This document shows positions 1 to 64,000 of a DNA stretch of 64,000 nucleotides, in pieces. The stretch comes from Hydrolagus colliei (taxonomy: Eukaryota), in the NCBI GenBank assembly GCA_035084275.1, contig CM068771.1:2232001-2296000 (forward strand), given 5' to 3'. The notes below the pieces were generated by a model that was not told the origin of the DNA, ran no database searches, and worked only from the letters and a program-made list of their open reading frames with translations. Each line of letters opens with the position of its first letter. The first letter of the stretch is position 1. The translations under genes were made by a program, and so were the position numbers.

Positions 1-3000
1 AATGTCGAAGGGTGATTCCAGGAACTAACCTGAGACGCAATCGTACGCTGCGTAATCTGACAGAAAAAGCTCGGAATCTGAGCCTGAATCTGACACAAGC
101 TGACAAGAAGCTTCACTGTGAGGAGCATCAGGAGGAACTGAAGCTGTTCTGTGAAACAGACAAGAAACTGATGTGTGTGATTTGCAGAGATGCCCGAGAG
201 CACAGAAACCACAGCTTCATCCCCATTAAGGAGGCCATTCAGGTCTATAAGGTAAAACACACCAGATTGTCAATTGTGCTTTTTTTTTCTTTTAAATGTG
301 ATATCCCTCCACAGCCCTGGAGTCACCTCGAGTCACCTGAACTCCCTCACCCCCTCTGGCCTACCTCCCGCACTATCCTATCCTCCTCCCTCACTCTCCT
401 CCATACAACCCTCTCCACTACTCTCGATTCACTTGCCCCTCTCACCTCCTGAACCGCCTCCTATTCGCAAATCTCACCTCAGTTCTCCAGTCAACTCCGC
501 TGCTTCAAGTGTCAGGTCCGGGCCACCGAAGGCACCTGGATCAAATCTGGCCTAACTGTCAACCAGTAACCGGTGAATATATCTCCAAACCCATACGCAA
601 CCTGGGCTTCAGGTACGACCCCCAATTACCTCTTAGCTGGACTACTCCTCCGTCCTCTTCGCCGGTCTCTCCTTCGCCACCATTCACAAAATCCAGCTCA
701 TACAGAATTCCACCGCCCGACTTTTAACATGTGCCAAACTCCGCTCCCCGATTACCCCAGTCCTTGTCAGACTGCGCTGGCTCCCTGTCCAAGAGAGGAT
801 CGATTTCAAGATCCTCACTCTTGTATTTAAACTCACCAATCCTCTGCATCTCACCACCTCTCTGACCTCCTCTCTCCTCCCAACAGTACCCGCTGCCATC
901 GCTTCACCGGGTCTGGCCTCATCCCTGTCACCTGAATCCTCCGGTCCACTATTGGTTGTCATGCCTTCAGCCACTACGCCCAAGGCTCTGGAACTCCCTT
1001 CCTCACTCCCTTCGCCTCACCACCTCTTTTCCCACTTTCAGGTCTCGGCTACAGACCTTCCTTTTGATTGCGTTTTGGTCACGTTCTTCCCCCTCCCCGT
1101 TGCTCAGCCCCTGATCTGTTATTGGAAAGTGGTCTGAGACGCTGTCCGGCGTGGAGAGCATTATATAAATCCAAGTTGTGGTTGTTGTTGACCCATACCT
1201 CTCCCTCCTTCCACACCTTCGAAACTCCCCCCCACCATCCCACAACTCCTCTGTCATCACAACCATATCATCTATGTAGCCCACTCCCTGCTCTCTTGAA
1301 CCCATGCCCACTACTCTCCTTACCTCCCAGATGCACCTCCTTAACCCCTACTCTCTAACTCCATCAATCTCTCCCTTTCATCCAGTAACATTCCCAACCC
1401 CCACGAAACAGCCAGAATAGAACAAAAAAATTACATTGATAGAGCCCTTTCACGTTGGGATGGTGTCCGAAGGGACTGAACAACCTCATCCTGAAGAAAC
1501 TTTCCCTGGACGCAAACCCTCTCTCCAACAACTGGCCCATCTCCAACATTGCTTTTCTTTCCAAGCTCCTTGAATGAATCGTTGCTTCCTAGCATCGATC
1601 TTTCCGTTCCTACCACTCCCTCTATGAGCTTCTACAATCAGATTTCCATCCTCGGAGTAGCACAGCAGTCAAGGTCACAATTCTGTCCTTCTTTGACCTG
1701 TCTCCTCGTCCTCCTCGATCTCTAAGCCAACATTGATACCATGAGCCACTGATTTCTCCTGCACCACCTCTCACCTCAACCTTCAAGATTCTATCCCTTT
1801 GACTGGTTCAGATCCTACCTGTCACATTTCCCATCTCCACGTTTTCTCCACGTGTCTCATGCTCTGTTCCTCAGGTCTCTGGCATTGGACCCTGCGCTTC
1901 AACCTCTACAATCTGTTGATGATATCATCCGCAGAATTTGGTAAATTCCCAAAAGTATTGGGATCACACTCTACTCTATCTCTCGGTGTCCACCATCGAT
2001 TCCAGGACGACTGGTGTCTTGACAGGCTGCCTGTCAGACATCAAGTCCTGGATGAGAGACAACTTTCTACAGCTGAATGTCAGCAAGACCGAGGCTCTCC
2101 TAATTGGCTCACTCTAGTGTCTGAATCTCAGAGTCTGACAATATCAACATCCACAGCTGCACAATCCACCACACCAAGCCAGTCAGAAACATGGGTGTCT
2201 TGTTTGACACTGACCTGTCTTTTCTCCCCCATATACGTGCCATGACCAGCACTGCCTTCCACCACCTCTGCAACATTGCCCATCTCTGCCACTTCCTCAC
2301 CCCTCAGGCCGCTGAAACCCGTACACATGCGTTTGTCACATCAAGCTGTACTACGGCAACTCTCACTTTGTCAGCCTTCCCAACTCTCCCTCCACAAGCT
2401 GCAGATCTCCCAAACCTATGCAACTTATGTTCGCTCCTAGTCCTGGCTCCACGACCACATCACCACTATGTTTGCCCAGCCCCATTGGCTCCTCGTCCCT
2501 CAGAGGATCAAATTCAAGATGATCGTCCACTCTTTGAAAACCCTCTATATCTGAGGGTTATCCGAATGCACTCCGCAATATTTATTGTCATATAGATTTG
2601 GTGGCAAAAGCAGCAGCCAAATTGCACAAATTACCATCCCACAAATACCAAAGGGCTCAACACCAATTCCATTTGATGTCCAGGTCACCAGAGAAACTCC
2701 CTTTGCTAATAGCTGAAAATATTCTCCTGAATAATCCATGGATTTTAGTTTAACTTCTCATTTGAAGGACGGCACCTCTGATCATCCTACTGTCCACCAG
2801 CACTGCACTGGGCTGTCAGCTACAACAATAATAATATTAATCCTTGCATTTGATATCGCGCTTTTCACATCTTATCGATGTCCCAAAGCACTTCACAGAA
2901 TCGACTGTAAAGTGAATTGACTGAATATATTTGTGGGCGACTCACAGTAGCCAATTGCTCACAGCAGTGTCCCACAAACAGTGGATTTAAATGACCAATT

Positions 3001-6000
3001 TTTTAATTGTGTTTTTTTTTACGGATTATTAGTAGGTGTGTGGAGTAAGGAAACTTACCAAGATTTCGTCCTGACTTGCTTGGATTCGAGCACAGGTCTC
3101 CGGTCTCCCAAGCTTGCAAGACAAGTGCTCTAACCACTAAGCCACAGGAGCTCAGTGGATTCATAGATTCATAGAGTTTTACGGCACAAAAGGAGGCCAT
3201 TCGGCCCATCTAGTCTGTGCCGGCTCTTTGAAAAGAGCGATTCAATCCCACTGCCCTGCCCGCTCCCCATAGCCTAATAGACCTGTTCTCGCTAAATAAA
3301 GATCTAATTCCCTTTTAAAAGTTGTTATCGAATCAGCCTCCACCACCTTTTCAGGCAAAGCATTCCAGATTCGAACAACTCGCTGAGTGAAAAAATTTCT
3401 CCTCAGCTCCCCTCTACTTTGCTTTGAAACTATTTTAAATCTGTGACCACAAGTCACAGATTCGCCCACGAGTGGAAATGGTTTTTCTCTATTTGCCCTG
3501 TCGAAACCCCTCATGATCTTATAAACCTCTATTAGGTCTCCCCTCAATCTTCTCTGCTCCAGAGAGAATAATCCTAGCTTATCTAGCCTCTCCTCATAGC
3601 TGAAGTTGAACAATGGAGTTGAAAGTCCTGATATGGGAGTTGACCCACAATTTTGTGAATCACAGACAAGAGAAACACAAACTGAACCGGATTGTTGATG
3701 GTTTTTTCCTCACAGTTTTTATTTAATTGCAGGATAAAGTGAAATCCTCCTTAGATTCTCTCACACAGAGGAAGGCCGCGGCTCTAGAAGCTGAAGTTAA
3801 ACAGAAACAAAAGATTTCACAAGTGAAGGTATGTTATGTTTGACCGATCGTGTACAGTCTAGTCTCCTAGTGTGTCTCTCTTTACTCTATGTTCACTGTG
3901 TGATGTCTCAGTGTGACTCTTCACTGTGTATTCATGGGGTAGTCTGACGTTTGATTTTTCAGGATCAGGTGAGCAGTCTGCAGATGGATGTCACGGCTGA
4001 GTTTGCTAAAATGTACCAGAACCTGACTGACAGAGAGCAGCGTGTAATCCGAGAGCTCAGACAGCGAGAGGAGGAGATTTTACACAGAATGGAGACAAAT
4101 CTGCGAGAGATTCAGAGCCAATTAGATTCTGTTCAGCGGAAGCTCTCAGGGTTACAGAAACAGATTGAGAAAGACGCACTAATCTTTCTGCAGGTAAAGA
4201 GATGGCATTTTAACAGTTACACACAGTCTGGAGATAAGTCTGACAGTTAAACAGATCAGTAATTTGATTAAATAATTTATTAAAAACCTCAAATGAATCA
4301 ATTAAAAACCTCTCCCTCCAAACAAGCAGCAGTTCTGACGAAGGGCTGTAGACCCGAAACATTGCCTTTTTTTCCGCTCTCCATGGATGCTGCCTGACCT
4401 GCTGAGTTTCCCCAGCCACTTTTGTTGATTCAGATTCACAGCATCTGTAGTATTTTGTGTTTTGTTTCAGTACTTTGGTTGATGTTTTCTTAGATTCTAT
4501 GAATGACTCTGCTGCTGCCAATCAGTACAGAAATAAACCCACATCAGTCACTCTCAGTGCCTGCAGTGTCCCTGCAAACCAACAGCCCAGGACAGATGTG
4601 GTTAAGAATAATAATAAGCCTTGCATTTGACATAGAGCTTTTCACATCTTATCGACGTCTGAAAGCGCTTCACAAGTTACCATGGAATTTACATTGATTG
4701 ATCGGTGTGAGAATGTTGGCATCTAATTACAGTATAATTATGTGTTATATCATGTGAGCTCAGATCTGTTTGTGTTTATTTCACTAGGAGGAAGCTGCTC
4801 GGAAGAGAAGGTATGAAAAGCTTTTTACAAAACATCCCCAGAATTTAATACCTGAAGAAACACAAAGTGTAGGTTCAATTTATAGTATGTTTGACTCTGA
4901 TTTCAGGATCAGTGATGAGGGTTTTACACTCTCAGTGTGTGAGGATGATCTGCCTGTGGGAATATACAACAGACTTGTACAATACACAGCCTGGAGAGAG
5001 ATGTTACCCAACATCAGTCCAGGTAAATGGCTCCCACTGTCACACTGAAGCTTTGTGAATATTGTTACATTCACCTGGATCCTCACAGGTTAAACATTGC
5101 AATGCCCTCCATAGCCTGAGGTCAGGTTGGATGATCCTATGCCTGTAGTACCGCGTTACCCTCAGCAGGTGGTGCTGTGTGAGCCCAACAGCCACTGCAG
5201 TCACACTGTCACCAGCGCCCTCTGCTGGCGGCGGGACAACATCACTGCAGTTGATTCTAACCCTCTGATGGGGATCAGTCACCAGCTCCCGGGTCCTAGT
5301 GCCCATCCCTTGACAATACTTTGTGTTGTTTCTCTCTCACTCCACTCTCTCTCACCACCTCACTACACTTTGTGCTGTTTCTTTTCCACCGTGCCTTTGG
5401 TCATCTTTCTACCCCTGGCTCAGTCCTGGGATCCGCTATTGTTAAGCGCTCTGAGACACCTTCCAACGTGGAGGACATTATATAAATCAAAGTTGTTGTG
5501 GTTGTTGTTGTTTCTCTCTCTCAGCTCCGGCCTCTCTGACTCTGGATCCTGAAACAGCCCATCCATTGCTCATCCTGTCTGAGGACCTGACCAGTGTGAG
5601 ACTCGGAGACACAGAGCAGCGACTCCCTGAAACCCCAAAGAGGTTTAGTTTCTGGCCCATTGTCCTGGGGTCTGAGGGCTTCACATCAGGGAGACATTAC
5701 TGGGAGGTGCAGGTGGGGAACAAGACAATGTGGATTGTGGGATTGGCCAGAGAGTCTGTCAACAGGAAACAACTAATCACATGGTCACCAGAGGAGGGGG
5801 TCTGGGGGGTGTGGTTGGTGGACGGGGACTATGTGGCTCTGACATCAACTCCCACCCCCCTGCCCCTGACAGTGAAGCCCGGGAAGATGGGAGTTTACCT
5901 GGACTATGAGGGGGGACAGGTGTCAGTTTACAACGCAGATAACATGTCTCATCTCCACACCTTCACCCAAACTTTCACTGAGAAACTGTATCCTCTATTT

Positions 6001-6060
6001 TGTCCCTTTCCTAACGAGGACGGAAACAACTCAGAGCCGCTGAAAATCTGCTGGTTATAA
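1..6060 (+). CDS. TRIM-A: RING-Bbox-coiled-coil-PRY/SPRY (B30.2) TRIM E3 ligase (TRIM39/TRIM69/A33-like class), 5'-partial
   Basis: Exons <1-251 (RING end, B-box [16 protein letters not shown]), 3733-3828 (96 bp), 3963-4193 (231 bp), 4788-4810 (23 bp), 4907-5022 (116 bp), 5525-6060 (PRY/SPRY: [30 protein letters not shown], stop TAA). All GT-AG with compatible phases; 96/231/23/116 is the typical TRIM exon series. Confidence 0.93.
300..2550 (+). mobile_element. Stack of decayed L2 fragments in TRIM-A intron 1 (mirrored at 61850-64000, partly shared with TRIM-B intron 1)
   Basis: Broken L2 motifs (RNLG.., [14 protein letters not shown]) and a (GTT)n tail at about 1180. Confidence 0.75.
2830..3159 (-). 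mobile_element. Orthologous copy of the tRNA-SINE in TRIM-A intron 1
   Basis: Reverse complement of 61231-61565. Confidence 0.85.
3160..3604 (-). mobile_element. CR1-clade LINE 3' end nested in a SINE
   Basis: ORF 3242-3613 ([44 protein letters not shown]), (TCTATGAA)-type tail; empty site at about 61230. Confidence 0.9.
5383..5508 (+). mobile_element. Severely truncated L2 tail in the PRY/SPRY acceptor tract (shared with TRIM-D, about 59245-59375)
   Basis: TSD TGTTTCT at 5376-5382 and 5509-5515; empty site in TRIM-C. Confidence 0.8.
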
Positions 6061-7266
6061 CCCGTTATGTTGATTATGTTGTTTATTGTTGTTGTTTGAT
6101 GCCCCCTCCCCATTTGCCCAATGGCCTCCCCCCCCCACCCCCACCCCTTCTTCGCTTACTCGCTTTCCCGGAGGCAGTACAGATATGGTTAATGATCAAA
6201 GAATCTCGATTGTATTCATGTATTGATGTGTCTATTATTAAATAAACTATTCTCACCGAGTTGGGATTGTCAAGTCTTTCGTGCCTCAAGGAATTGTACC
6301 AAAGCTAAGCATATTGGGCATGTTCACAATGGAATAGAGAAGGTTGAGAGGTGACATGATTACTGTCTTTCAGATTCTAAAGGGGAAATACAATATAGGT
6401 CATCACAGCATGGTTCAACTTGTCCAGAAAAGCAAAGACAGAGGAGTTGGCCTGTGATTGAAGGGGGTAAATTCAGAACAAACGTACGCAAACACTATTT
6501 CAGTGAGCGACTGGTGAACCTGTGGAACAGGCTTCCTAGGGGTTCGGTTGATTCTTTTAAACACAGATGAGCTGGTTTTCTTTTAGGGAATAACATTATG
6601 AGGAAAAGTATATAGGTAGTTTGGGACGTATGTGGAAGCAAATATACATATGAAGAATAAGGTAGCTTGACTAAAGAATATAATGCTTTGTGAACTGTAC
6701 AAAGTGTCGTTATATCCCAACTGATTGAGAAAAGAACAGACCGTTTCATCTTGTGTATCTGGCCTGTCTGGCTCCACACACTAGAGCAGCCCTGAGGTAG
6801 CTGTGGGGACAAGGACAGACCAGTTTGTCACTAACAATACACTAACTGACCTGTTAACCACAGAGGGGAAGGGCTTAGCACAAGAACTGGGGCCATAGAT
6901 ATAATAACAACAATAATAATAATCCCTGCCATTGATCTAGTGTCTTATCAAATCTTCAAGATGTCACAAAGCACTTCACTAGTCTGAGTGTGATCACTGT
7001 GTGACACACTCGCTCACATTCACACTCGCTCACACACTACAATCTGTGGAAGAAGGTTAGATCTCAGGGGGCAGTTACAGCTCAGTGGGGGTTATAGTTC
7101 AGTGAGGTAGGTCGCAGCTCAGGAGGGGAGGTTACAGCTCGGGCTCAAATAGAGAATTGTTTCCATCTCTGGAATGCTAATAATAATAATAATCTTTATT
7201 ATTGGAGGAAGACAGTCCTGGTCAGGGACTGAGTGTGAGGAATGAAGGACAACTGTGGGTCGAATG

Positions 7267-7634
7267 TAGGGTCCGGCGATTTATTGATATATCGGTTATA
7301 TCCGATATAATTTTCATATTGATATGCCGATATCGGAATTCAAAATACATCGATATATTCAAAAATTCTATGTATCGGAAAAATTTGATATATTGCAAAT
7401 ATCGATATATCGTTTCCGGCGATATATCGGTATATCGGAAGATGTCGGTATAATGCGGACTTTTTTAACTTACCTTGTCAATATCCAAATCCGAGTGCAC
7501 ACTGGAATGCGCACACATGTGCAGGACAACGAAAACACGCGATATTGATATCGGCAATATCAATATATCGGTATATATCGGTATGGGCAAACGGATATAT
7601 CTATATCGGAAAATTTCCATATTGACGGACCCTA
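7267..7634. mobile_element. Non-autonomous hAT transposon (MITE), 368 bp
   Basis: TIR TAGGGTCCG..CGGACCCTA; perfect 8-bp TSD GTCGAATG (7259-7266 and 7635-7642); many CGATA/TATCG subterminal motifs; empty site in the right arm at about 55875. Confidence 0.92.
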
Positions 7635-8554
7635 GTCGAATGTGACTCCAAATGTTGTGAACTGATTCAGAATGTCTGATGGATAGGCCGGAGAGGCTGA
7701 GGAGGTCAAAGTCACAGGTTAGAAGACATTGACAGGAGTCATGAGAATCACTTCATCTTCCTCCATTGCCAGTCCTCCATCATCCACCTCAATGGGACCG
7801 CACTCTCTTGGTTTAAGTACTACCTGACAAACCAGCAGAACTACATCCTTCCTCTGGGTGATGTCATCTGCAGGCTTTGGGGTTAACTCTACATGTGTGC
7901 GGATGAAGCCCAACTCTACTTTTCCACACCCAGTCTACTCCTCTCTTCCCACAGCAGTACCCACTCTCTCTGTTCTACTGGGACCAGCCATCTCCGTGAA
8001 TCCTCCGCTCCATCATTAGTGGCTTTGCAGGGAGAGGGAGGAGAGGGAGAGTGCAGTAGGAGTGGTTAGGGAGTAGGGGAGTAGAGATGGAGGAGCCAAG
8101 AGGAATTTGTTGGGGCAGGACAGTGGGAGAGGTAGGAGAAGAGGGTGGTGTACACACTATGGTCAAGTACACACTGGCACAAATGTTGTATGAAACAAAT
8201 ATAAATTTATTAATTCAGATTAGTGACAATATTGGTGATTAAAGGAATTCAATAGAATAATTCTTACGTATCCCTGTTTGATTCCCTCGATGGTGATGGT
8301 GACCAAACCAATGTTGCAAAAGAGATGGAGAAGTAAATTCCAATTCCATTCAATATCCTCCAAAAGGTATTCAGCTGCTGCTGCACAGATGCCCGTTCGA
8401 TCAGCCAAACAATGATCATGTACTGTTGCTTGGTTTGAGAGTGTCAATGGAGGTTGAGATTCATTGTAGTCATATTCTTTATCTTTCCTTCTTCTCCCTC
8501 TTGTTTCTCATTGATTGTGGAGTGTCTCTCTCTTGATCGGCAAGACTTTGCTTC

Positions 8555-8560
8555 TTTATT
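8555..8560 (-). terminator. Candidate polyadenylation signal of MHC-1
   Basis: AATAAA on the minus strand, the first I noticed downstream of the stop; conserved in MHC-2 at 53584-53589. Confidence 0.4.
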
Positions 8561-9388
8561 CCCAAAGTTAGAGGTGTTTAGTCCATACCTCCCGTGAGAA
8601 TGTTTGTTTTTACCAACACAGCTGTTTCTCCAGCTACAGATCATCTCTCCATTAGGAAGGCAGAGAAAAGGCCTGAAAAACAGTTTGCCATCCACACACA
8701 GTCCCCAGTCTCCTCTGCAAAGCCAGACAAACCAGCTCCCATCACAACTGACCAACCACATGTCTCAAATATACACATACTATTTATAAAAATGAGATAT
8801 TCATTTGACACATTAATTACAGATGTTACTAAACTAACACATTCTATGGTCACATGGAAATACCTGAGATTACACATTGTTACATACAATCACAAAGCAA
8901 CAAAAGCAACGTACTGACAGCTATACAGTCTCCAAATATACAGTCAATTCACTCTACAGTGTAGTCTGTGAAGTGGTTTGAGACATTGATAAGATGTGAA
9001 AAGTGCTATAACAAATGCAAGATAATAGTAATGTAGATAAATGCAAAGATTCAATAACAACAATAATATTACATTTGTATAGCGCCAATCATGTCGAGAG
9101 GACAACCCCAAGGTGCTGGACAGTGAATGGTTTAAAACAGTTGTGAAAATCAACTGAGGGGTGTCGAGAAAAAATGGTTTCACGCAACAGGTTCTACTGA
9201 CCTGGAAAGCATTGCATGAAATATCGCAAGAAGCCGATTGAAAAGTTTTATGAGAGAAGCAGAAACTTGTTTGGGAAGGACAAGTTTGCAGGGTTACAAG
9301 GAGAGAGTGGGAGAGTGGGAATATTTTGGACATCGCTTCTCAAAGAGCTGACACAGACACGATGGGCTGAATGACCTCCTTCTGTGCT

Positions 9389-9752
9389 CAGGGCCAGCAC
9401 TAGCTTTAGTCAAACTAGGCGGTAGCGTAGGGAGTCAAAATTTGGGGTAGTGCGCCAGTCCTAGTTACAGAGCACGTACAGTTTGCCACATACATCGAAA
9501 ATGACTGCTGTTATCTGCTGGCGTATAGTGGCAGAGGCGCGGGAGTTACCAGTAACCTGACTGGACAATGCTTAATACTTAAATACAACACAAGTGTGTT
9601 TTATATATGAATGTATAACTATCACCATTACTTTCATTGATAACTAATTACTGTATATGAATTTTTAGTATTAACATTAGCTTATCAAATGTTACTAGGG
9701 GCGCACATCTGAAGGCTCGCCTAGGGCACCATGTACTCTTGTGCCTTTCCTG
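9389..9752. mobile_element. Older hAT-like MITE (also at 52392-52755)
   Basis: Degenerate TIRs CAGGGCCAGCACTAG / CAGGAAAGGCACAAG (10 of 15 match); only partial 8-bp flank match. Confidence 0.4.
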
Positions 9753-9972
9753 TCTGCACAGTGTCATTCTGTTATTTTATGATATTTCAAATGTGACTTT
9801 AGTGGCTCTTAATATCTCTGTGAATCACAAGGTGATGGATCAGTTTCCAGCTTACACTTGATGCTGAGTTAAGGAATCTGCTGTTGAACCAGTGACTCTG
9901 AGAGAGAATCAGTGACCGAGAACAAAGGAGACACCAGAACACTCAGGCCTTCCCTCTGCTCCTCTCAGTCCC

Positions 9973-12900
9973 TCAGGCCGGCTCCTCCAGTCTCTGATCC
10001 TCACTCACTCCAGGTTCCTGAGAACAAAAATACAACCAAACTCCTCAGGTTGTTTTCTGCCCATAAATATACAACTAATTCACTTTACAGTGTATTCTGT
10101 AAAGCGCTTTGAGACAACTAGAAGATATGAAAAGCTCTGTATAAAATACAAGGATAATTATTATCATCTGCCAGGCAGTGTGACCCCCGAGCTGTTTCAC
10201 TCCTAGTGTCTGACACACAAGGAAACCCATTACCCTGATCAGCCGGGTGTCTGACGAATGTGGATATCAATAACTGCTTAAAGTGGCAAACGGGGTAAAA
10301 AATAAAAATATTTTTTTTTCATGTCAAAGTGTACTTTGGACTATATACTTTCAGAAATAAACTGTTTTGATTGGTGAAATAAAGTTATTTCCAAAGAAAT
10401 ATGGGGTAAAGAATAAGAATTCAACAATAAAGTGGAAGTGCTTATTTCAAATGTCGCATTCCCTATATTTCTTTGGAAATAAGTTTATTTCACCAATCAA
10501 AACAGTTTATATAGTTCCGAGTACACTTTGACATGACAACATTATTTTTATTTATTTTTATTTTTTACCCCACTTGCCACCTTAAGAGTTTCCAAGGCAG
10601 ATCAGATAGTTGTTCATGTGAATGCTCTGGCCTGCTCCACGTCAGTGACCCACCTTCCCGCTCCATCATTGGTGACTGGACCTTCAGAATTTCTGCCCCT
10701 ATCGTATAAAATTCCATCCATCCTTCTTTCCTCCTCACCCTCTCTCTTGCCTCCTTCCCCCTACCTGTGTCTCAAAAACCTCCTATTCGACCCAGCCTTC
10801 GGACACGTTCCTATCTCCCCCCCCCACTCCACCCCACCCCCCCATCCCCGATACCGATTTCCAGCTCGGTTTCAAACCCTGACATCCACGAGTTGGGACC
10901 ATCTCCTGTTGTTAACGACGCTGTGTAAATATGATTTTGTATTGTGTGTCACCAACACGCAAAATCTCCCTGTTTCTGGGATGGAGTGCATGCTCTCCCT
11001 CACTAGAGGGATGCATCCTGCATATCTAATTCCCAAGAGTGTTAGGTGCAGATTAGCAAAAGTTAAGCCTTAGGGAGCCCAGAGTGTGTGTTGGGGTGGC
11101 TGCTAGACTCTAAACAGCTGAACCCACACAGATTACCCACTGAGTGCTCTGTCTCTCAAGCTTCCCGCTGCTTGTCCAACCTCCAGGGCATTGGCCACAG
11201 GGATAACAGGAGCCAAGAGGGAAGAGAGACCGCCCCAGTGACCATTGGTAACCAGCTCAGGGTCATGGCCATGGCGACTGTGGCCACTGACTGACCAATA
11301 CCCTGTTAGCTTCACTGTGACCACTTCCCCATCTCAGGAAGGACAGGGCGAGGGAGGGGGATGGGCACAGTCACAGCCCAGCCCTGATCCTCACAGAGGG
11401 TTAGTGTTGGTTAGTGGCTGGTGATCACTGGAGGTCCTGTGGCTCTGACCAGCTCTTACCTGTGGCTGATTGTCGGATAGTGTCAACTGGCTACTGTCAG
11501 TACCTGTTACCAGAAACAGATGAAAGATCAAGTCAGAGTCAGACAAACAATATCTACATGTTACAGACACACAATAGCCATATACTAGTCAGCCAGACAA
11601 TATTTGTGAGTTAAAGTCAGTCAGAGAGAAATTGCTTGTGTGTCACAGATCAAAGAGCCAGACAGAAAACACCTGAACAACACTGTAGAGTTGTGTAAGT
11701 GAGGTGAGCATAGAACATGTCACACGTGTTGCACACACGTCCACTTGCAGAGTGTCACCTGACACTGTGTTCAGCCTCACTGTGATTCACTTACCGGATG
11801 GTCCTCTGTACTGGTGATTCCCGGGGCCTGTAAATAAACAAGCGTCAATTACAAACAGACCAGTGACACACAGACACACACAGACAACAGCCAGTTACAC
11901 ACAGAGATACAACACTCAGTCACATAATCACAGACACACCCATGTCACAACCCTTCAGAAACACATATGGATGCATACACACACACATATACACACACAA
12001 ACACATACACACACAAACACATACACACACACATATACACACACATACACAGATGCTGGATGTACCCTCAAAAACACACAGACATCAGGCAGATACACAC
12101 AGATATAAAACACTCAGTCACAGTCACACACAGATCCCAAGCATTCATACTCACACACACCCATAACAGCCAGTTACACACTGAGAGACAACAGCCAGTC
12201 ACACACACTCAGACATACACAGACCACAACCCTTCACAGATAACACACACAGAAAACTACCTGCTTTTACTCTCGCAGACAAAATCCATCACAGAAACAC
12301 AGAGACAAACAACGCTCAGTAATAGAGGGCCAATGATGCGATAGTTAGCACTGATGATACACAGACATGTGAGGTTGAGTTACTGAATGACTCTGAGCTA
12401 AAGCTCAGGGGAATCACAGCCCCCATCACCTTCTCTCTCATTTCCTCACCATTTTTCTCTCTTTTTATTTTCCAGATGAGAATCCCCACAACAATCCCAA
12501 CAGACAACAGGAAGATCCCGATGACCAAGCCAAGGATCCAGGAAACAGAAAGGTCCGGAGTTCTCTCTGTTTTCCCATTTGTATGGAGTGAACAGAAAAC
12601 AAACTTTCATTAAGATCCTGAGAGCAACAAATAGACTGTTACAAACACCTGTTTGGAGAAGACAGAGCGATCATCCATAGACAGGCTGACTCCTCGTGTT
12701 ATTCCCAGTTTCCCGCTGTGCTCTTGTATATGTGGTGGAGACACCTGTGCAGTTGACACCCAACTCTACTTCTCCTCAACTGTGAATACAGGTCCACTGA
12801 TGTCCTGTCAGCCGGTTGGTTAGACATCAAGGCCTGGATTAATTTAAAATTCCTGCAGATGAGGGATTGAGCAATAGTGTTGCAAACAGAAGCCATAATC

Positions 12901-53629: not shown

Positions 53630-54965
53630 AACAACAAACAAAACTTACATTTATATAGCGCCTTTCACGTTGAGAGGACATCCCAAGGCGCTGTACAGTC
53701 AGGTAGGACAAGAGCAGGGTGGGAAGGATCCGGGCAGGATGAAGAATAGTAGGAAAAGTAACTATATATTAGTGGGCAAAACGCGGCAGCCAAATTGAGC
53801 ACAGCAGTGTCCCACAATCAGTCATGGAAGTGGGACTAGGGGCAAAAGGGGGTAAAGAAGCAAAAGGGGAGGGGTCGAGGCAGGGGGAAGAAAAGCAGGA
53901 AAGTCGACTGTATATTTGTGGGCGAAACGCGGCAGCCAAATTGCGCACAGCAGTGTCCCCACAAACAATCGCGAAAATGGGGCCAGGGGAGAAAGGGGGA
54001 AAAGAGGGTAAGGGGGAGAGGGAGGGAAAGGTGGGATGGGTTAGGGTTAGGGAGGAAGAGGGGGGAGAAAGGGGGGAAAGGAAGAGAGGGATGGAAAGAT
54101 GGGTGGGGGCAAGATCAGGAAGAGGGAAGAGGGAGGGAAGGGGAAAAGGGAGGAGAGAAAGTGGGGAAAGGGAGTGAGGGAAGAAGAAGATGGGGGCAGG
54201 GGTGGGGGGAATCAAACAACAATAATAAACAACAAAAGCAATAATATTAACAACAAAAACAGCAACAAACAATAACCAACAATCGTCCAGCAACCACTCC
54301 TTGTCCTCGCCGCCCGCCTGGATGATCCCTGAGATGGCGAGAAAAAAGGGCCCAGTGTGGTGTCAGGCCCCAAAACCCACCGGCTCCTCAGTCGGTGAAC
54401 CCGGGGACTCGGTGATGGCCCTGGCACCTCGGACATGGTGTGTCTGGCCGGCTCGCACAGCAGCAGCAGCAGCAGCCCGATCGCCGTCTGGATCTCCCGC
54501 GACGAGATGATCCGTCGCTTGCAGCACCTGCGTGCTCTCCCCCTCGCGGAAGACGTGCGCCACCCGCTGCCTGAGGAAAGTGCCAAGGTCGCGGCCTTCC
54601 TAGGTCCTGTCGAGGGGCCACTCTTCGCACAGCCGGAGGAAGCGCCGACAGCGAATGGCCGCCATTCCCTCCGTGATACTCCCCGTCGTCCCAAAAAGAT
54701 GGCTTCGTTGGCCGGCTGCCCATAGAGGAAGAACCGGCAGCGATGGAAGCCGGCTCCAGCTGGTGGGCTGAGCGGTGCATAGCGTGAAAGCTGTGTCCCC
54801 GCGATCGTTCCAGCCCGAAGATCTCTAGCCTCGGGAGTGGGTGGTCCCGTGTGAAAACAAATATCACTATATATCTAATATTACTATTAGATAGAATAGA
54901 TGATATAAAATATAAATATAAAATTTCTTCTATCGCCAGGGAGGGGGCGAGGTGGAGAGAGTGCA
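53630..54965 (-). mobile_element. Composite CpG-rich insertion ending in an L2 tail
   Basis: Absent from the left arm (contiguous at about 8520); has a CpG-rich block 54300-54850, a purine tract, two SINE-core copies and an L2-type tail at 53630-53700. Confidence 0.6.
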
Positions 54966-57900
54966 GGTGCACAATCAATGAGAAACAAGAGGGAGAAGAA
55001 GGAAAGATAAAGAATATGACTACAATGAATCTCAACCTCTATTGACGCTCTCAAACTAAGCAACAGTACATGATCATTGTTTGGCTGATCGAACGGGCAT
55101 CTGTGCAGCAGCAGCTGAATACCTTTTGGAGGATATTAAATGGAATGGAATTGGAATTTACTTCTCCATCACTTTTGCAACATTGGTTTGGTCACCATCA
55201 CCATCGAGGGAATGAAACAGGGATACGTAAGAATTATTCTATTGAATTCCTTTAATCACCAATATTATTACTAATCTGAATTAATACATTTATATTTGTT
55301 TCATACAAAATTTGTGCCAGTGTGTACTTGACCATAGTGTGTACACCACCCTCTTCTCCTACCTCTCCCACTGTCCTGCCCCAACAAATTCCTCTTGGCT
55401 CCTCCATCTCTACTCCCCTACTCCCTAACCTCTCCTACTGTACTCTCCCTCTCCTCCCTCTCCCTGCAAAGCCACCAATGATGGAGGGGAGGATTCACAG
55501 AACCCAGAGGTGGCTGGTCCTGGTAGAGCAGAGAGTGGGTACTGCTGTGAGTAGAGAGGAGTAGACTGGGTGTGGAAAAGTAGAGTTGGGCGTCATCCGC
55601 ACACGTGTGAAGTTAATCCCAATATCTGTGGATGACATCACCCAGAAGGAGCATGTAGATGAGATGTAGTGCTGACGGTTTGTCAGGTAGGACTCAAGCC
55701 AAGCGAGTGTAGTCCCATTGAGGTGGATGATGGAGGACTGGCAATGGAGGAGAATTAAGTGATACTCATGTCTCCTGTCAATGACTTCTAACTTGTGGCT
55801 CTGACATCCTCAACCTCCCCTCCCCGGCCTATCCTTCAGACTTTCTGAATCAGTTCACAACTTTTTGGAATTAGGTTCGACCCACAGTTGTCCTTCCTTC
55901 CTCACACCCGGTCCCTGATCAGAACTGTCTTCCTTTAATAATAAAGGTTATTATTATTATTAGCATTCCAGAGATGGAAACAATTCCCTATTTGAGCCCG
56001 AGCTGTAACCTCCCCTCCTGAGCTGCGACCTACCTCACTGAACTATAACCCCCACTGAACTATAACCCCCACTGAGATGTAACTGCCCCCTGAGGTCGAA
56101 CCTTCTTCCCCAGATTGTAGTGTGTGAGCGAGTGTGAATGTGAGCGAGTGTGTCACACAGTGAGCACACTCAGACTAGTGAAGTGCTTTGAGACATCTTG
56201 AAGATTTGATGAGGCACTAGATCAATGGAGGGATTATTTATATTGTTGTTATTATATCTATGGCCCCAGTTCTTGTGCTAAGCCCTTCCCCTCTGTGGTT
56301 AACAGGTCAGTTAGTGTATTGTTAGTGACAAACTGGTCTGTCGTTGTCAAACATCCTGTGATGCCCTATATTGTATTTCCCCTTTAGAATCTGAAAGACA
56401 ATAATCATGTCACCTCTCAACCTTCTCTATTCCAGTGTGAACATGCCCAATATGTTTAGTTTTGTTAGAATTCCTTGAGGCACAAATGACTTGACAATCC
56501 CAACTCGTTGCGACTAGTTTAATTAATAGTAGACAGATCAACACATGAATATAATCGAGCAATAAAGCAATCACAATATTACCCGCTCTCTTTGACTCCA
56601 GACAGTAGATGACAGTGGAAGGAGTTCAGTTATTTAACTCTCTCCCTGTATCCTCCTGTTACTGTACTGAAGCTGGCAAAGCATTGCTGATTATAGTACA
56701 AATTCTCCTAATCTGCCATTGCTGCTGTCTTGTGAGCATATTTCATCATTAACCATATCCTGTATTCCCTTGGATTACTCAAGGTTGCTAATAATTAAAC
56801 TTCACCAGCCCTCAATAGGCCCATTTCTTATTTGGAGTTGTTCTGACACATTCTGCAAGATCCTCATCTGTTTATCATCTTTCAAACATGTGGTAACAGC
56901 CGACACAGGCTGGTCAACCGACATCCCCCTGACATCTGGACCCTCACCCTCTTTCTTCTAAACTAAGAAAAACAATTCTAGTTAAGGTTATCCCTTGTGA
57001 TCAATAGACTAAAGGTGCAGCCAAACACATAGTCATTTTACTGAATTTGTCCAAGCTTGAATCACATATTCAACATTCCCTTATATGTAATTTATAGACA
57101 ACAGGAAATAAACAGCCAGATCTATGTTGTCGAACTGTTGCTCTTCACAATTCAGTCGTTCCTTTCCATCAATTATTTTGCTTGATCTCCTCTGTATTTT
57201 CTCGATTCTCCAATAGCCTTGTCACACTGCGGCCAGAAATGTACCCAGTACATAGAGCATTGATGGGAGAGCTTCAGTTCATTGTCAGTCTGCATTCCCA
57301 GGTCCTCTGTGTTGCCGATCAATATTATTTTGCTTCTATTCCAATGATAGTCCCTCCCACAATTTTTTGATCCCATTTTTACTTTATGTTTTTCACATTC
57401 AATTTCATTGGCCAACCTAATGCTCATTGAGGAGATGAAGCCCAGTGGGTGGGTTTGGGGGAGGGGGGTAGGGGGTGGCTCCATTACACTGTGTAATGGT
57501 GTGGGTGGGGCTGGGTCACCATGGGCTGTGGAGGCTGTGGAGCTGCCTGGCTCAGGACTGGAGACGGCCACAGAGGCTACACTCCATTGATGCCGACAAT
57601 CAGTTCTAATCTTAACTGATTAACTGGAGCCAAACATTGTTCACTCCTCGACATCAACGGCCTCAGAGCGACATCAAGGCTTTAGCTCATAGGGAACCTA
57701 GATTGGAATTTATTCCTAAAACACAGACAGTGAATTACATGGAAACTGAGCCAAATTGTGCACAGCAGAGAACCACAAACAGTCACGGAAATGGAGCCAG
57801 GGGAGAAAGGGGGAAAGAGGGCAAGGGGAGAGGGAGGGAAAGGTGGGGTGTGGTACAGTCAGGGAGGAATTTGTGGGAGAAAGGCAGGTAAGGAGGATAG

Positions 57901-58092
57901 AGGGAGGGAAAGTTGGGTGGGGGACAAGATCAGGGAGAAATGGGGAGAAAATGATGCAAGAGGGAAGAGGAAGGGAAGGGGAAAAGGGAGGAGAGAAAGT
58001 GGGGAATGGGAGTGAGGGAAAAAGAAGGGGGGGGAGGCCATTGGGAAAATGGGGAGGGGGGGGGGAATCAAACAGCAACAATAAACAACATA

Positions 58093-58682
58093 CAACAACA
58101 ACAATTTACATTTATATAGCGCCTTTCACGTCGGGAGGACGTCCCAAGGCGCTAAACAAGAGGCATGTGACCCGAGCTGGGAGGGGAGTGTTTGGGAAGG
58201 GGTGAAACACGAAGGGGAGGTAAAAGAGTTCGGGGTGGAACAAAAGGCACGATCGAAGAGGAAAGTCTTCAAATCGGCCTTGAAAGAGGAAAGGGAAGAG
58301 GCGAAACGGAGGGATTGAGGGATGGCATTCCATAGGGTGGGAGCGGAGAAACTGAAGGCCCGGCCTCCGATGGTGGGGCGGTTCGGGCGGGGGGCTTGGA
58401 GCAGGCCAAGTCCTGTAGAACGGAGGGCCCGGGTGGGCTTGTAGGGGGAGAGTAGATCAGCTAGGTAGGATGGGGCAAGGCCATGTAAGGCCTTGTAGGT
58501 GAGGACGAGGATCTTAAATTCGATCCTCTGGAGGATGGGGAGCCAGTGGAGACGGGCGAGGGTGGGGGTTATGTGGTCACGGAGGCGGGTGCGGGATAGT
58601 ACACGGGCTACAGAGTTTTGGATGGCCTGCAGCCTATGAATGGAGGAACTGGGGAGGAACGTTCGTTGTGAGGAGATGCTGG
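58093..58682 (-). mobile_element. L2 3' fragment in the TRIM-D 3' UTR
   Basis: Closely similar to 27170-27757; TSD AACATA at 58087-58092 and 58683-58688; absent downstream of the TRIM-A stop. Confidence 0.85.
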
Positions 58683-58702
58683 AACATAATCAACATAATG
58701 GG

Positions 58703-61102
58703 TTATAACCGGCAGATTGTCAGCGGCTCTGAGTTGTTCCCGTCCTCATTATAGAAAAGACCGAGGAGAGGATACAGTCTCTCAGTGAAAGTGCTGGTGA
58801 AGGTGTAGAGATGAGACATGTGATCAGCGTTGTAAACTGACACCTGTCCCCCCTCATAGTCCAGGTGAACTCCCACCTTCCCGGGTCTCACTGTCAGGGG
58901 CAGGGGGGTGCGGGGTGACGTCAGAGCCACATAGGCCCCGCCCCACAGCCTCACCCCCCAGACCCCCTCCTCTGGTGACCATGTAATCCATTGTTTCCTG
59001 TTGACAGACTCTCTGGCCAATCCCACAATCCACTCAGTCTTGTTCCCCACCTGCACCTCCCAGTAATGTCTCCCTGATGTGAAGCCCTCAGACCCCAGGA
59101 CAAAGGGATAGTCACTAAACCTCTTTGGGGTGTCAGGGAGCGGCTGCTCATTGTCTCCGTGTCTCACACTGGTCAGGTCCTCAGACAGGATGAGCTCGGG
59201 ATGGGCTGTGTCAGGATCCAGAGTCAGAGAGGCCGGAGCTGAGAGAGAGAAACAACAACAACCACAACAACTTTTATTTGTATAATGTCCTCCACGTTGG
59301 AAGGCGTCTCAGAGCGCTTGACAATAGCGGATCCCAGGACTGAGCCAGGGGTAGAAAGATGACCAAAGGCACAGTGGAAGAGAAACAGCACAAAGTGTAG
59401 TGAGACGGTGAGAGAGAGTGGAGTGAGAGAGAAACAACACAAAGTATTGTCAAGGGATGGGCACTAGGACCCGGGAGCTGGTGACTGATCCCCATCAGAG
59501 GGTTAGAATCAACTGCAGTGATGTTGTCCCGCCGCCAGCAGAGGGCGCTGGTGACAGTGTGACTGCAGTGGCTGTTGGGCTCACACAGCGCCACCTGCTG
59601 AGGGTAACGCGGTACTACAGGCATAGGATCATCCAACCTGACCTCAGGCTATGGAGGGCATTGCAATGTTTAACCTGTGAGGATCCAGGTGAATGTAACA
59701 ATATTCACAAACCTTCAGTGTGAGAGTGGGAGCCATTTACCTGGACTGATGTTGGGTAACATCTCTCTCCAGGCTGTGTATTGTACAAGTCTGTTGTATA
59801 TTCCCACAGGCAGATCATCCTCACACACCAAGAGCGTAAAATTCTCATCACTGATCCTGAAATAAGAGTCAAACATACTATAAATTGAACCTACACTATG
59901 TGTTTGTTTGTGTGTTACATTCTGGGGATGTTTTGTAAAAAGCTTTTCATACCTTCTCTTCCGAGCAGCTTCCTCCTAGTGAAATAAACACAAACCGATC
60001 TGAGCTCACATGATATAATACATCATTATAATGTAATTAGATGCCAACATTCTCACACCGATCAATCAATGTAAATTCCATGGTAACCTGTGAAGCGCTT
60101 TCAGACGTCGATAAGATGTGAAAAGCTCTATCTCAAATGCAAGGCTTATTATTATTATTCTTAACCACATCTGTCCTGGGCTGTTGGTTTGCAGGGACAC
60201 TGCAGGCTCTGAGAGTGACTGATGAGGGTTTATTTCTGTACTGATTGGCAGCAGCAGAGTCATTCATGGAATCTTAAGAAAACATCAATCAAAGTACTGA
60301 AACAAAACACAAAACACTACAGATGCTGGGAATCTGAATCAACAAAAGTGGCTGGGGAAACTCAGCAGGTCAGGCAGCATCCATGGAGAGAGTAAAAAAA
60401 GTCAACGTTTCGGATCTACAGCCCTTCGTCAGAACTGGGGCTTGTTTGGAGGGAGAGGTTTTTAATTAATTTATTTGAGGCTTTTAATTATTTATTTAAT
60501 CAAATTACTGATCTGTTTAACTGTCAACAACAACAACAATTTACATTTATAGAGCGCCTTTCACGTCGGGAGGACGTCCCAAGGCTTTGGATTATATCTC
60601 CAGACTGTGTGTAACTGTTAAAATGCCATCTCTTTACCTGAAGAAAGATTAGTGCGTCTTTCTCAATCTGTTTCTGTAACTCTGAGAGCTTCTGCTGAAT
60701 AGCATTTAATTGGCTCTGAATCTCTCGCAGGTTTGTCTCCATTCTGTGTAAAATCTCCTCCTCTCGCTGTCTGAGCTCTCGGATTACACGCTGCTCTCTG
60801 TCAGTCAGGTTCTGGTGCATTTTAGCAAACTCAGCCGTGACATCCATCTGCAGACTGCTCACCTGCTCCTGAAAAATCAAGCGTCAGACTTTACCCGATG
60901 AACACACAGTGAAGAGAGACACACTGAGACATCACACAGTGAACATAGAGTAAGGAGAGACACACTGGGGGCCTAGACTATACACGATCGGTCAAACACA
61001 ACTTACCTTCACTTGTGAAATCTTGTGTTTCTGTTTAACTTCAGCTTCTAGAGCCGCGGCCTTCCTCTGTGTGAGAGAATCTAAGGAGGATTTCACTTTA
61101 TC
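58703..61102 (-). CDS. TRIM-D: coiled-coil and PRY/SPRY exons of a TRIM gene (RING/B-box exon lies beyond the window end)
   Basis: Exons 61007-61102, 60638-60868, 59953-59975, 59741-59856, 58703-59238 (full SPRY, stop TAA); open frame. Sequence 61103-64000 is the inverted copy of TRIM-A intron 1. Confidence 0.92.
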
Positions 61103-61226
61103 CTGCAATTAAATAAAAACCGTGAGGAAAAAAACATCAACAATCTGGCTCAGTTTGTGTTTCTCTTGTCTGTGATTCACAAAATTGTGGGTCAACCCCC
61201 ATATCAGGACTTTCAACTCCATTGTT

Positions 61227-61565
61227 CAACTCCACTGAGCTCCTGTGGCATAGTGGTTAGAGCACTTGTCTTGCAAGCTTGGGAGCCCGGAGACCTGTGT
61301 TCGAATCCAAGCAAGTCAGGGCGAAATCTTGGTAAGTTTCTTTACTCCACACACCTAATAATAATCCGTCCAAAATAAACCCACAATAAAAAATTGGACA
61401 TTTAAATCCCCTGTTTGTGGGACACTGCTGTGTGCAATTGGCTACCGTGAGTCTCCCACAAATATATATAGTCAATTCACTTTACAGTCTATTCTGTGAA
61501 GCGCTTTGGGACATCGATAAGATGTGAAAAGCGCGATATCAAATGCAAGGATTAATATTATTATT
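61227..61565 (+). mobile_element. tRNA-derived SINE with L2-like 3' tail
   Basis: A box TGGCATAGTGG (61246-61256), B box GTTCGAATCC (61299-61308), central CTGCTGTGTGCAATTGGCT core, (ATT)n tail, TSD ATTGTT; empty site in TRIM-C at about 38285. Confidence 0.85.
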
Positions 61566-64000
61566 ATTGTTGTAGCTGACAGCCCAGTGCAGTGCTGGTG
61601 GACAGTAGGATGATCAGAGGTGCCGTCCTTCAAATGAGAAGTTAAACTAAAATCCATGGATTATTCAGGAGAATATTTTGAGCTATTAGCAAAGGGAGTT
61701 TCTCTGGTGACCTGGACATCAAATGGAATTGGTGTTGAGCCCTTTGGTATTTGTGGGATGGTAATTTGTGCAATTTGGCTGCTGCTTTTGCCACCAAATC
61801 TATATGACAATAAATATTGCGGAGTGCATTCGGATAACCCTCAGATATAGAGGGTTTTCAAAGAGTGAACGATCATCTTGAATTTGATCCTCTGAGGGAT
61901 GAGGAGTCAATGGGGTGGGCAAACATAGTGGTGATGTGGTCGTGGAGCCAGGACTAGTAGAGAACATAAGTTGCATAGGTTTGGGAGATCTGCAGATTGT
62001 GGAGGGAGAGTTGGGAAGGCTGACAAAGTGAGAGTTGCCGTAGTACAGCTTGATGTGACAAACGCATGTGTACGGGTTTCAGCGGCCTGAAGGGTGAGGA
62101 AGTGGCAGAGATGGGCAATGTTGCAGAGGTGGTGGAAGGCAGTGCTGGTCATGGCACGTATTTGGGGGAGAAAAGACAGGTCAGTGTCAAACAAGACACC
62201 CATGTTTCTGACTGGCTTGGTGTGGTGGATTGTGCAGCCGTGGATGTTGATATTGTCAGTCTCTGAGATTCAGACACTAGAGTGAGCCAATTAGGAGAGC
62301 CTCGGTCTTGCTGACATTCAGCTGTAGAAAGTTGTCTCTCATCCAGGACTTGATGTCTGACAGGCAGCCTGTCAAGACACCAGTTGTCCTGGAATCGATG
62401 GTGGACACCGAGAGATAGAGTAGAGTGTGATCCCAATACTTTTGGAAATTTACCCAATTCTGCGGATGATATCATCAACAGATTGTAGAGGTTGAAGTGG
62501 AGGGGACCAAGGCCAGAGACCTGAGGAACAGCGCACGAGACATATGGAGAAAACGTGGAGATGGAAAATGTGAGAGGTGGGATCTGAACCAGTCAAAGGG
62601 ATAGAACCTTGAAGGTTGAGATGAGAGGTGGTGGAGGAGAAATCAGTGGTTCATGGTATCAATGTTGGCTTAGAGATCGAGGAGGACGAGGAGACAGAAG
62701 GATCCCAGGTCAAAGATGGACAGAATTGTGACCTTGACTACTGTGCTGCTCCGAGGATGTAAATCTGATTGTAGAAGCTCACAGTGGTAGGAACGGAAAG
62801 ATCGAAGCTGGGAAGCAACGATTCATTCAAGGAGCTTGGAAAGAAAAGCAATGTTGGAGATGGGCCAGTTGTTGGAGAGAGGGTTTGCATCCAAGGAAAG
62901 TTTCTTCAGGATGGGTTTGTTCAGTCCCTTCCCGACTTGAAAGGGCTCTATTGAAGTAATTTTTTTGTTCTATTTTGGCTGTTTCTTGGGGGTTGGGAAT
63001 GTTACCGGATGAAAGGTAGAGATTGATGGAGTTAGAGAGTAGGGGTTAAGGAGGTGCATCTGGGAGGTAAGGAGAGTAGTGGGAATGGGTTCAAGAGAGC
63101 AGGGGGTGGGCTACATAGATGATATGGTTGTGATGACAGAGGAGTTGGGTGGTTGGGGGGCAGTTTTGAAGGTGTGGAAGGAGGGAGAGGTATGGGTCAA
63201 CAACAACCACAACTTGGATTTATATAATGCTCTCCACGCCGGACAGCGTCTCAGACCACTTTCCAATAACAGATCAGGGGCTGAGCCACGGGGAGGGCGA
63301 AGAACGTGACCAAAAGCGCAGTCAAAAGGAAGGTCTGTAGCCGAGACCTGAAAGTGGGAAAAGAGGTGGTGAGGCGAAGGGAGTGAGGAAGGGAGTTCCA
63401 GAGCCTTGGGCGTAGTGGCTGAAGGCATGGCAACCAATAGTGGACCGGAGGATTCAGGCTACAGTGATGAGGCCAGACCCTGTGGAGCGAAGGCAGTGGG
63501 TACTGTTGTGAGGAGAGAGGAGGTCAGAGAGGTGGTGAGGTGCAGAGGAGTGGTGAGTTTAAATAGAAGAGTGAGGATCTTGAAATCGATCCTCTCTTGG
63601 ACAGGGAGCCAGCGCAGTCTGACAAGGACTGGGGTAATCGGGGAGCGGAGTTTGGTACACGTTAAAATTCGGGCGGTGGAATTCTGTATGAGCTGGATTT
63701 TGTGAATGGTGGCAGAGGAGAGACCGGCGAAGAGGACGGTCGGGTAGTTGAGCTAAGAGGTAATTGGGGGTCGTACCTGAAGCCCAGGTTGCGTGCGGGT
63801 TTGGAGATATATTCACCGGTTACTGGTTGACAGTTAAGCCAGATTTGATCCAGGTGCCTTCGGTGGCCCGCACCTGACCCTTGAGGCAGCGGAGTTGACT
63901 GGGGAACTGAGATGAGATTTGCGAATAGTAGGCGGTTCAGGAGGTGAGAGGGGCAAGTGAATTGAGAGTAGTGGAGAGGGTTGTATGGAGGAGAGTGAGG

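Follow-up and report, generated by a model that had tools for sequence, protein, structure and literature searches.

In the ampliconic palindromes of the human and primate Y and X chromosomes, mirrored arms are held alike by arm-to-arm gene conversion. Class I genes of the major histocompatibility complex (MHC) reportedly form duplication blocks in the primate HLA region, and the 3' half of these genes is said to undergo concerted evolution. In the teleost U-lineage, exon shuffling reportedly keeps old alpha1 lineages on homogenised backbones of alpha3 and the transmembrane segment (TM), and class I introns are said to be homogenised as well. The chicken MHC-B has a BF1-TAP1-TAP2-BF2 core and a TRIM region, and in humans TRIM10/15/26/27/31/39/40 lie in the class I region. 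Here, these systems are compared with a locus of the holocephalan Hydrolagus colliei, in which four TRIM genes (A to D) and two class I genes (M1 and M2) are interleaved in mirror order. The locus fills a stretch of 64,000 nucleotides (GenBank assembly GCA_035084275.1, contig CM068771.1, positions 2,232,001 to 2,296,000, forward strand), which is called the window and from whose first letter all coordinates are counted. The organisation of the MHC in holocephalans has been called data-deficient (PMC10751288).

The locus is a true mirror arrangement. It is probably a real and aged inverted segmental duplication of a TRIM/nonclassical class I block, which was partly re-homogenised by non-allelic gene conversion. 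All results refer to one haplotype of one assembly. The base composition of the window is 47% G+C, its 64,000 nucleotides contain no run of Ns, and scans of the window for Rfam families and tRNAs gave no matches.

Mirror architecture of the locus

In a self-BLAST comparison, 22 inverted high-scoring segment pairs, many of them with E = 0, form a colinear chain that links 389-33590 with 64000-36149 in strict mirror order. Gene models were built from stop-to-stop open reading frames (ORFs), Pfam, tblastn with Callorhinchus proteins and splice-site inspection. They place six genes in the order TRIM-A(+), class I M1(-), TRIM-B(+) / TRIM-C(-), class I M2(+), TRIM-D(-), with RING, B-box and PRY/SPRY matches across the four TRIMs and MHC_I and C1-set matches for the two class I genes. 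The arms, the central spacer and the genes are as follows.

389..21073, no strand: left arm with TRIM-A, M1 and the M1 promoter; colinear inverted chain that extends past the window start.
43642..64000, no strand: right arm, the reverse complement of the left, with M2 and TRIM-D; inverted chain that extends past the window end.
33591..36146, no strand: central spacer with the end of the TRIM-B SPRY exon, the TRIM-B 3' flank and about 950 bp with a fragment of a short interspersed nuclear element (SINE).
1..6060, plus strand: TRIM-A; partial exon 1 at 1-251, exons 2-6 at 3733-3828, 3963-4193, 4788-4810, 4907-5022 and 5525-6060.
12450..20123, minus strand: class I M1; leader 20057-20123, alpha1 18669-18929, alpha2 13739-14014, alpha3 13348-13626, TM 12450-12566.
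24666..33790, plus strand: TRIM-B; exons 24666-25076, 29197-29292, 30512-30742, 31855-31877, 31974-32089 and 33261-33790.
36132..41817, minus strand: TRIM-C; exons 1-6 at 41407-41817, 38072-38167, 37684-37914, 37064-37086, 36852-36967 and 36132-36478, with exon 6 truncated.
44459..50998, plus strand: class I M2; leader 44459-44525, alpha1 46930-47190, alpha2 49436-49711, alpha3 49822-50100, TM 50882-50998.
58703..64000, minus strand: TRIM-D; exons 2-6 at 61007-61102, 60638-60868, 59953-59975, 59741-59856 and 58703-59238, with exon 1 past the window end.

The self-BLAST chain, Pfam and the gene models thus bear out the original prediction, a reading made from the letters of the window, that gene order and orientation are palindromic (A+ M1- B+ / C- M2+ D-). 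The arms, which had been expected to measure at least 21 kb and to leave the window on both sides (1-21220 vs 43660-64000), were matched as 389-21073 vs 64000-43642; because position 389 pairs with 64000, they continue outside the window. The symmetry centre had been put at 35-36 kb, near the measured value of about 34.9 kb: the innermost aligned pair is 33590/36149, and the centre is therefore a spacer of about 2.5 kb around this point. A mirror of the whole locus is found for the positions, including those of B and C, but it does not extend to the sequence pairing of B with C.

The well-matched arms mirror each other over at least 20.7 kb. Of the about 20.5 kb in each arm, 12,607 columns align without gaps, at 95.0% identity, and the remainder consists of arm-specific insertions of transposable-element size. 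The outer chain (389-14023 vs 64000-49427) is made up of blocks of 0.2-2.9 kb with 90-97% identity, split by transposon-size insertions. From about 14 kb through the class I 5' half to 21073/43642 the chain is patchy, and further inward, where B faces C, only exon-sized patches with 83-89% identity are found. The geometry is that of inverted arms with a short unique spacer (about 2.5 kb, or a gap of 22.6 kb, 21073-43642, for the well-matched arms). The arms are not near-identical (>99.9%) over their whole length; mean identity is 95.0-95.7%, and 300-column windows range from 86 to 99.7%.

Insertions private to one arm are present in both arms, with clean empty sites in the partner and with target-site duplications or terminal inverted repeats (TIRs). 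The following were recognised.

Left arm, 3159-3601: 441-bp fragment of a long interspersed nuclear element (LINE).
Left arm, 7264-7635: 370-bp element with TIRs TAGGGTCCG...CGGACCCTA and an apparent 8-bp target-site duplication.
Left arm, 9807-11097: insertion of 1.3 kb.
Left arm, M1 intron 2: LINE of about 2.7 kb with a reverse-transcriptase ORF.
Right arm, 58100-58683: SINE of 582 bp.
Right arm, 53634-54970: element of 1.3 kb.

The 370-bp element looks like a hAT-type miniature inverted-repeat transposable element that was active after the duplication.

At the centre, homology of the TRIM-B 3' flank to the flanks of A and D extends to 35192, the stretch 35193-36146 is AT-rich and holds the SINE fragment, and homology to TRIM-C begins at 36147. 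The arms reach unequally into the centre, and the C copy is cut within an exon. This is the geometry that a fold-back inverted duplication leaves, in which case TRIM-C was truncated at birth; a later deletion is equally possible.

Divergence along the arms

Identity along the arms is uneven, as had been predicted with uniform identity named as the contrary outcome: a sliding-window comparison gave a chi-square p of 1e-25 (300-column windows, outer arm). Likelihood segmentation yields seven blocks, for which mismatch rates are given on left-arm coordinates.

389-5552: 3.9% mismatch.
5553-8018 (partner 59210-55476): 9.1%; TRIM PRY/SPRY exon and 3' flank.
8019-9348: 3.9%.
9349-13934 (partner 52795-49516): 2.3%, the lowest rate; class I 3' flank, TM, alpha3 and 3' part of alpha2.
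13935-19788 (partner 49515-44603): 13.8%; 5' part of alpha2, intron 2, alpha1 and intron 1.
19789-20838: 3.8%; class I leader and promoter (96.2% identity).
20839-21073: 13.8%.

The 2.3% block contains a run of 340 bp, starting at 11694, that is identical in both arms (P ~ 4e-6). For the class I half, a two-rate change-point test sets the switch at left-arm position 13787, inside alpha2 (2.7% vs 10.6%, 2*dLL = 83), so that change point and segmentation together locate it at about 13787-13935. Nucleotide differences between M1 and M2 amount to 1.5% in the leader, 13.0% in alpha1, 7.2% in alpha2, 2.2% in alpha3 and 1.7% in TM. Synonymous divergence (dS) between the two is 0.20 for alpha1, 0.11 for alpha2 and 0.03 for alpha3, while between TRIM-A and TRIM-D it is 0.12-0.23 in exon 6 (PRY/SPRY) vs 0.04 in exons 2-5. 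Since dS tracks total divergence, the blocks differ in age and not in selection alone. Positive selection as the only cause of the divergent SPRY and alpha1/alpha2 blocks was ruled out, because dS is raised there too and omega lies at 0.5-1.0.

The original prediction needs adjustment in its details. Likeness was said to be highest from TRIM intron 1 to class I alpha2; this stretch is interrupted by the SPRY block at 9.1%, and its class I end falls within alpha2. Lower likeness was expected at alpha1 and the promoter, which holds for alpha1 and fails for the promoter/leader with its 3.8%. Partial homogenisation or staged duplication had been offered as causes: uneven identity fits the former, and the alternation of low and high blocks, at least six times, speaks against the latter. 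Overlooked were the SPRY high-divergence block, an in-frame stop in M2 and the truncation of TRIM-C.

Exchange among the TRIM copies

In a protein tree with 38 cartilaginous-fish TRIMs, mostly from Callorhinchus milii, A, B, C and D form one clade (support 100/97), separate from the sampled Callorhinchus genes, within which B is sister to A+C+D (98/91). The pairing of A with D is weak, and the topology is ((A,D),C),B. Over exons 2-6 and introns, A, C and D are nearly star-like, with 57, 51 and 42 unique sites, respectively, and pairwise identities of 92-94%, or about 95% when B is added in a filtered four-way alignment. Along the gene, the proportions of sites unique to A, C or D shift (p = 0.009).

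TRIM-B differs from A, C and D by 12-17%, and B and C also differ in intron content and completeness. TRIM-C therefore carries, although it faces B, a 3' half of the A/D type (38291-36147), with about 94-95% identity to A and D (92-97%). This A/D-like tract starts exactly at transposon insertions that are present in A and D and absent from C and B. At the other end of the gene, B matches A in exon 1 and the first part of intron 1 with 97% identity over A 1-490 and with 80% thereafter, without an indel at the switch; exon 1 of TRIM-C reaches just 90-93% identity to A or B. Within the SPRY exon, A is first the odd one out and then D, and in the 3' half A, B and D are equidistant. The clearest conversion tract is that of A with B over exon 1, i.e., between direct copies and not from arm to arm.

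Mosaic identity, switches within continuous homology and a tree that is discordant with gene position, the signs of ectopic gene conversion, are thus all found. The TRIM mosaics are read as marks of repeated non-allelic exchange among paralogs, partly between copies on the same strand. A single reciprocal inversion between B and C was ruled out as their source, because B and C switch at non-homologous places (near A-coordinate 490 and near 2829/3609, respectively); in the interval, both genes are of the divergent type.

In the 3' flank of B, 339 bp (34854-35192) match the 3' flank of A (6547-6885) with 96.5% identity, while the adjoining B flank matches D with just 87%. This stretch is likely a further exchange tract between same-strand copies.

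Origin of the locus

According to the explanation favoured here, a TRIM-class I(-TRIM) block would have been duplicated in inverted orientation, at a time matching about 10-14% neutral divergence. Later, conversion from arm to arm and among TRIM copies of the same strand, in tracts of about 1-5 kb, would have returned several stretches to 2-4% divergence. Overwritten in this way would be the TRIMs from intron 1 to intron 5, class I from its 3' flank to alpha3 and again at the leader/promoter, the 3' half of C and exon 1 of B. The blocks encoding recognition surfaces (the PRY/SPRY exon, alpha1 and alpha2) would have kept the older divergence or taken in sequence of other paralogs, and the inner right-hand copies would now be decaying, M2 with a nonsense codon and C without half of its SPRY. 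The inverted arms are long and similar enough that recombination between them could invert the intervening segment of roughly 35 kb.

Several observations weigh against this explanation. Exchange could have run in either direction, and the divergent blocks may have been taken in from paralogs beyond the window instead of being left over from the old sequence. Few synonymous sites enter the estimates (S = 28-98 per segment), and in introns 1 and 2 some of the low-identity alignments are short or fall on low-complexity stretches. When the four TRIMs were put through a GENECONV-like permutation test, a single fragment was significant (A-C, p = 0.001); the test is not relied on, because it is confounded by B-unique sites. 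A simple palindrome also predicts that B pairs with C, which the sequence accommodates only with extra conversion events. Finally, structure and copy number would rest on a single haplotype in a single assembly.

The first of these points leads to the alternative that fares best, in which the whole arm was duplicated recently (about 2-4% divergence) and SPRY and alpha1/alpha2 of one arm were later overwritten by distant paralogs from outside. Both families are large in C. milii, with 14 class I matches and thousands of TRIM matches, and the equidistance of A, B and D in the SPRY 3' half, together with the shift of the odd one out, would suit such imports. No donor is visible in the window, however, and M1 and M2 stay mutually nearest in alpha1 and alpha2 against every C. 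milii sequence. This alternative is unlikely, and as it also requires non-allelic conversion, it is a variant of the favoured explanation and not a separate mechanism.

Staged duplication without gene conversion, with an early inner part (alpha2 to promoter, perhaps with B and C) and a later outer part, would account for the two clear divergence classes of about 2-4% and about 9-14%. The repeated alternation of low and high blocks along one arm would, however, call for many separate in-register insertions. One boundary cuts through the alpha2 exon although the gene is otherwise continuous; homology-driven replacement would naturally explain such an in-register change, and staged duplication would need a second copy to land exactly there and to rebuild a whole gene. 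The switch from 97% to 80% between A and B likewise has no indel at the junction, and staged duplication is accordingly considered very unlikely.

The weakest alternative, allelic haplotypes of one block mis-joined head to head, with balancing selection producing the peaks at the binding exons, is highly improbable: divergent MHC haplotypes do also show peaks, including in dS, at alpha1/alpha2 and SPRY over a lower baseline, but there is no N gap, the baseline here is 2.3-3.9%, at least six clean transposable-element insertions are spread over both arms, B and C, which would be the alleles, are unlike in intron content and completeness, are 12-17% apart in exons 2-6 and have C nearer to A/D than to B, and fold-back chimeras yield near-identical arms in place of the observed 86-99.7%. 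The insertions, the divergence of 2-14%, the lack of gaps and the non-allelic nature of B and C therefore make a fold-back or haplotig artefact unlikely, and its marks, near-identical or gapped arms and allelic partners, were not found.

Inverted duplication followed by partial conversion could be taken one step further. In an autosomal immune palindrome, conversion would homogenise the framework (introns, coiled coil, alpha3/TM and promoter), and selection would bar it from the recognition modules (PRY/SPRY and alpha1/alpha2). This extension is a doubtful one. If it were true, the unit of duplication and diversification would be a B30.2 sensor together with a class Ib molecule, which would hint at a functional coupling of MHC-linked TRIMs with class I at the base of jawed vertebrates.

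The locus serves as a worked example of how a block grows by inverted duplication, with partial likeness from conversion, distinct binding exons and decay, and it leaves the general understanding of how multigene immune regions evolve unchanged. For annotation, M1, A, B and D are to be treated as the functional copies rather than M2 and C, and the region should be regarded as prone to mis-assembly and structural variation.

The class I genes

M1 and M2 are recognisable as MHC class I heavy-chain genes. Pfam MHC_I matches the alpha2 exon with 7.5e-16 and C1-set matches alpha3 with 2.7e-15; the alpha1 exon alone gave no Pfam class I match. Spliced M1 aligns with class I heavy chains of the PDB (phmmer) over residues 27-294, covering alpha1-alpha3, with E = 1e-42. 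Both alpha2 and alpha3 have their cysteine pair, and alpha1 ends with an N-I-T site. All exon junctions of both genes are in phase 1 with GT/AG sites, and the reading frame of M1 is intact.

The alignment with the classical chain 5h5z_A was compared at the conserved contact residues of the peptide termini (Y7, Y59, Y/R84, T143, K146, W147, Y159 and Y171). M1 has H at Y7, R at Y59 and L at both T143 and W147, and so departs from the classical residue set. Lacking the usual peptide-terminus residues, M1 was therefore filed as nonclassical (class Ib), and M1 and M2 represent a putative nonclassical class I lineage. At the amino-acid level, M1 and M2 are 74% identical in alpha1, 89% in alpha2 and 96% in alpha3, vs 47-88% to C. 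milii. They are mutual closest relatives in every domain, against the C. milii sequences. The same result rules out trans-species alpha1 lineages, since in no domain does a C. milii sequence come as near to M1 or M2 as these two come to each other.

The alpha2 exon of M2 contains an in-frame TGA (49663-49665) at the position of a CGA in M1 (13785-13787). This is a CpG-type change, and the other M2 exons are open. The TGA could stem from a sequencing error; if it is genuine, M2 could be a null allele or a pseudogene.

In both class I genes, a separate transposon has inserted into intron 2, within about 10 bp of a splice site whose consensus is kept. In M2, this is a SINE-tail insertion of 118 bp (49309-49426), which ends 9 bp 5' of the alpha2 acceptor; in M1, the LINE with the reverse-transcriptase ORF (RVT_1; about 15932-18657) begins about 9 bp past the alpha1 donor. 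Just past the leader, intron 1 holds a G-rich minisatellite on the sense strand, with a period of 20 and about 20 copies in M1 (19188-19581) and a period of 19 and about 10 copies in M2 (44580-44773). A second repeat, of 18 bp, lies about 430 bp upstream of each class I start codon (20550-20608 in M1, 44173-44225 in M2). The upstream block of the class I genes (20124-20281 vs 44301-44458) is 94% identical between the two genes and contains CCCATTGGCTG, which resembles an inverted CCAAT/Y-box, followed by TGAGTCAG. The GAAANNGAAAS motif of an interferon-stimulated response element (ISRE)-like site has no match in either class I promoter.

The TRIM genes

The TRIM genes share a structure of six exons with GT/AG sites, in which a RING/B-box exon is followed by exons of 96, 231, 23 and 116 bp and by the PRY/SPRY exon. 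Pfam detects RING and B-box in exon 1 of B and C and PRY and SPRY in exon 6 of A, B and D, as in class IV TRIM proteins of the RING-B-box-coiled-coil (RBCC) type. TRIM-B is complete and intact and encodes a RING-B-box-coiled-coil-PRY/SPRY protein of 468 aa. The frames of TRIM-A, whose exon 1 starts outside the window, and of TRIM-D are intact as far as they are visible.

TRIM-C has the class IV features only in part. Homology in its exon 6 stops at 36147, which corresponds to position 60/121 of the Pfam SPRY domain, and a new stop follows after ...TSPPTTENG, giving a predicted product of 407 aa. No remnant of the rest of the SPRY exon or of the 3' flank was found nearby. With half of its SPRY gone, TRIM-C is likely a pseudogene.

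Upstream of the start codons of B (24560-24665) and C (41818-41920), a conserved AAGGAAGTTAGA(C/T)AAGGAA with tandem GGAA cores is present, which may be a shared TRIM regulatory element.

Comparison with known systems

The closest relatives of both families are found in C. milii. The best class I protein matches are 14 C. milii sequences with 54-72% identity, and the best TRIM matches, among thousands, are C. milii proteins annotated as 'zinc-binding protein A33 / nuclear factor 7-like' (56-68%). At the nucleotide level, C. milii loci are about 80-87% identical to the window, introns included. With best values of 72% for proteins and about 80-87% for nucleotides, C. milii itself was rejected as the source of the window, and the matches point to another holocephalan. 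Class I of elasmobranchs reaches just 20-25% identity to the window genes in alpha1. In the C. milii assembly GCA_018977255.1, the class I scaffold MU250313.1 and the TRIM array MU249860.1 hold the same families (62-72% and 56-68%, respectively) in multiple copies. In the pieces seen, however, class I stands beside class I and TRIM beside TRIM, with neither interleaving nor a mirrored block. The unplaced MU250313.1 (49 kb) has at least four class I genes of the window lineage, of which three follow one another in tandem and one is placed tail-to-tail; no TRIM separates them.

Among jawed vertebrates, no branch has had its MHC organisation studied less than the holocephalans, and the window shows a lineage-specific class Ib family interleaved with PRY/SPRY TRIMs. 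In the literature searched, neither this locus nor an interleaving of TRIM with class I genes is described for holocephalans. TRIM/B30.2 genes beside class I are a long-known theme, of which the interleaved and mirrored TRIM/class Ib block of a holocephalan is a new example.

As in MHC class I duplicons, class I has been copied together with its neighbours, alpha3/TM are homogenised (1.7-2.2%), alpha1/alpha2 have diverged (7-13%) and one copy may be a pseudogene. The window differs from these duplicons in that the copies are inverted, the neighbours are TRIMs, the species is a holocephalan and the lineage is nonclassical, with matches that are only Callorhinchus-like.

With the Y and X palindromes the locus shares mirrored arms of tens of kb, a short spacer, genes within the arms and signs of exchange between the arms. 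In contrast to their arms (>99.9%), those of the window have identities of 86-99.7% with a mean of about 95%, in a patchy distribution, and exchange between same-strand copies is at least as clear.

The arrangement of two opposed class I genes around immune genes, and of PRY/SPRY (B30.2) TRIMs adjoining class I, recalls the chicken BF core and MHC-linked TRIM clusters. Here, however, the class I genes enclose TRIMs instead of TAPs, and they point outward from a class I/TRIM promoter pair arranged head to head. The TRIMs of the window are lineage-specific paralogs of the 'A33/nuclear factor 7-like' type, and nothing places the window within the MHC proper.

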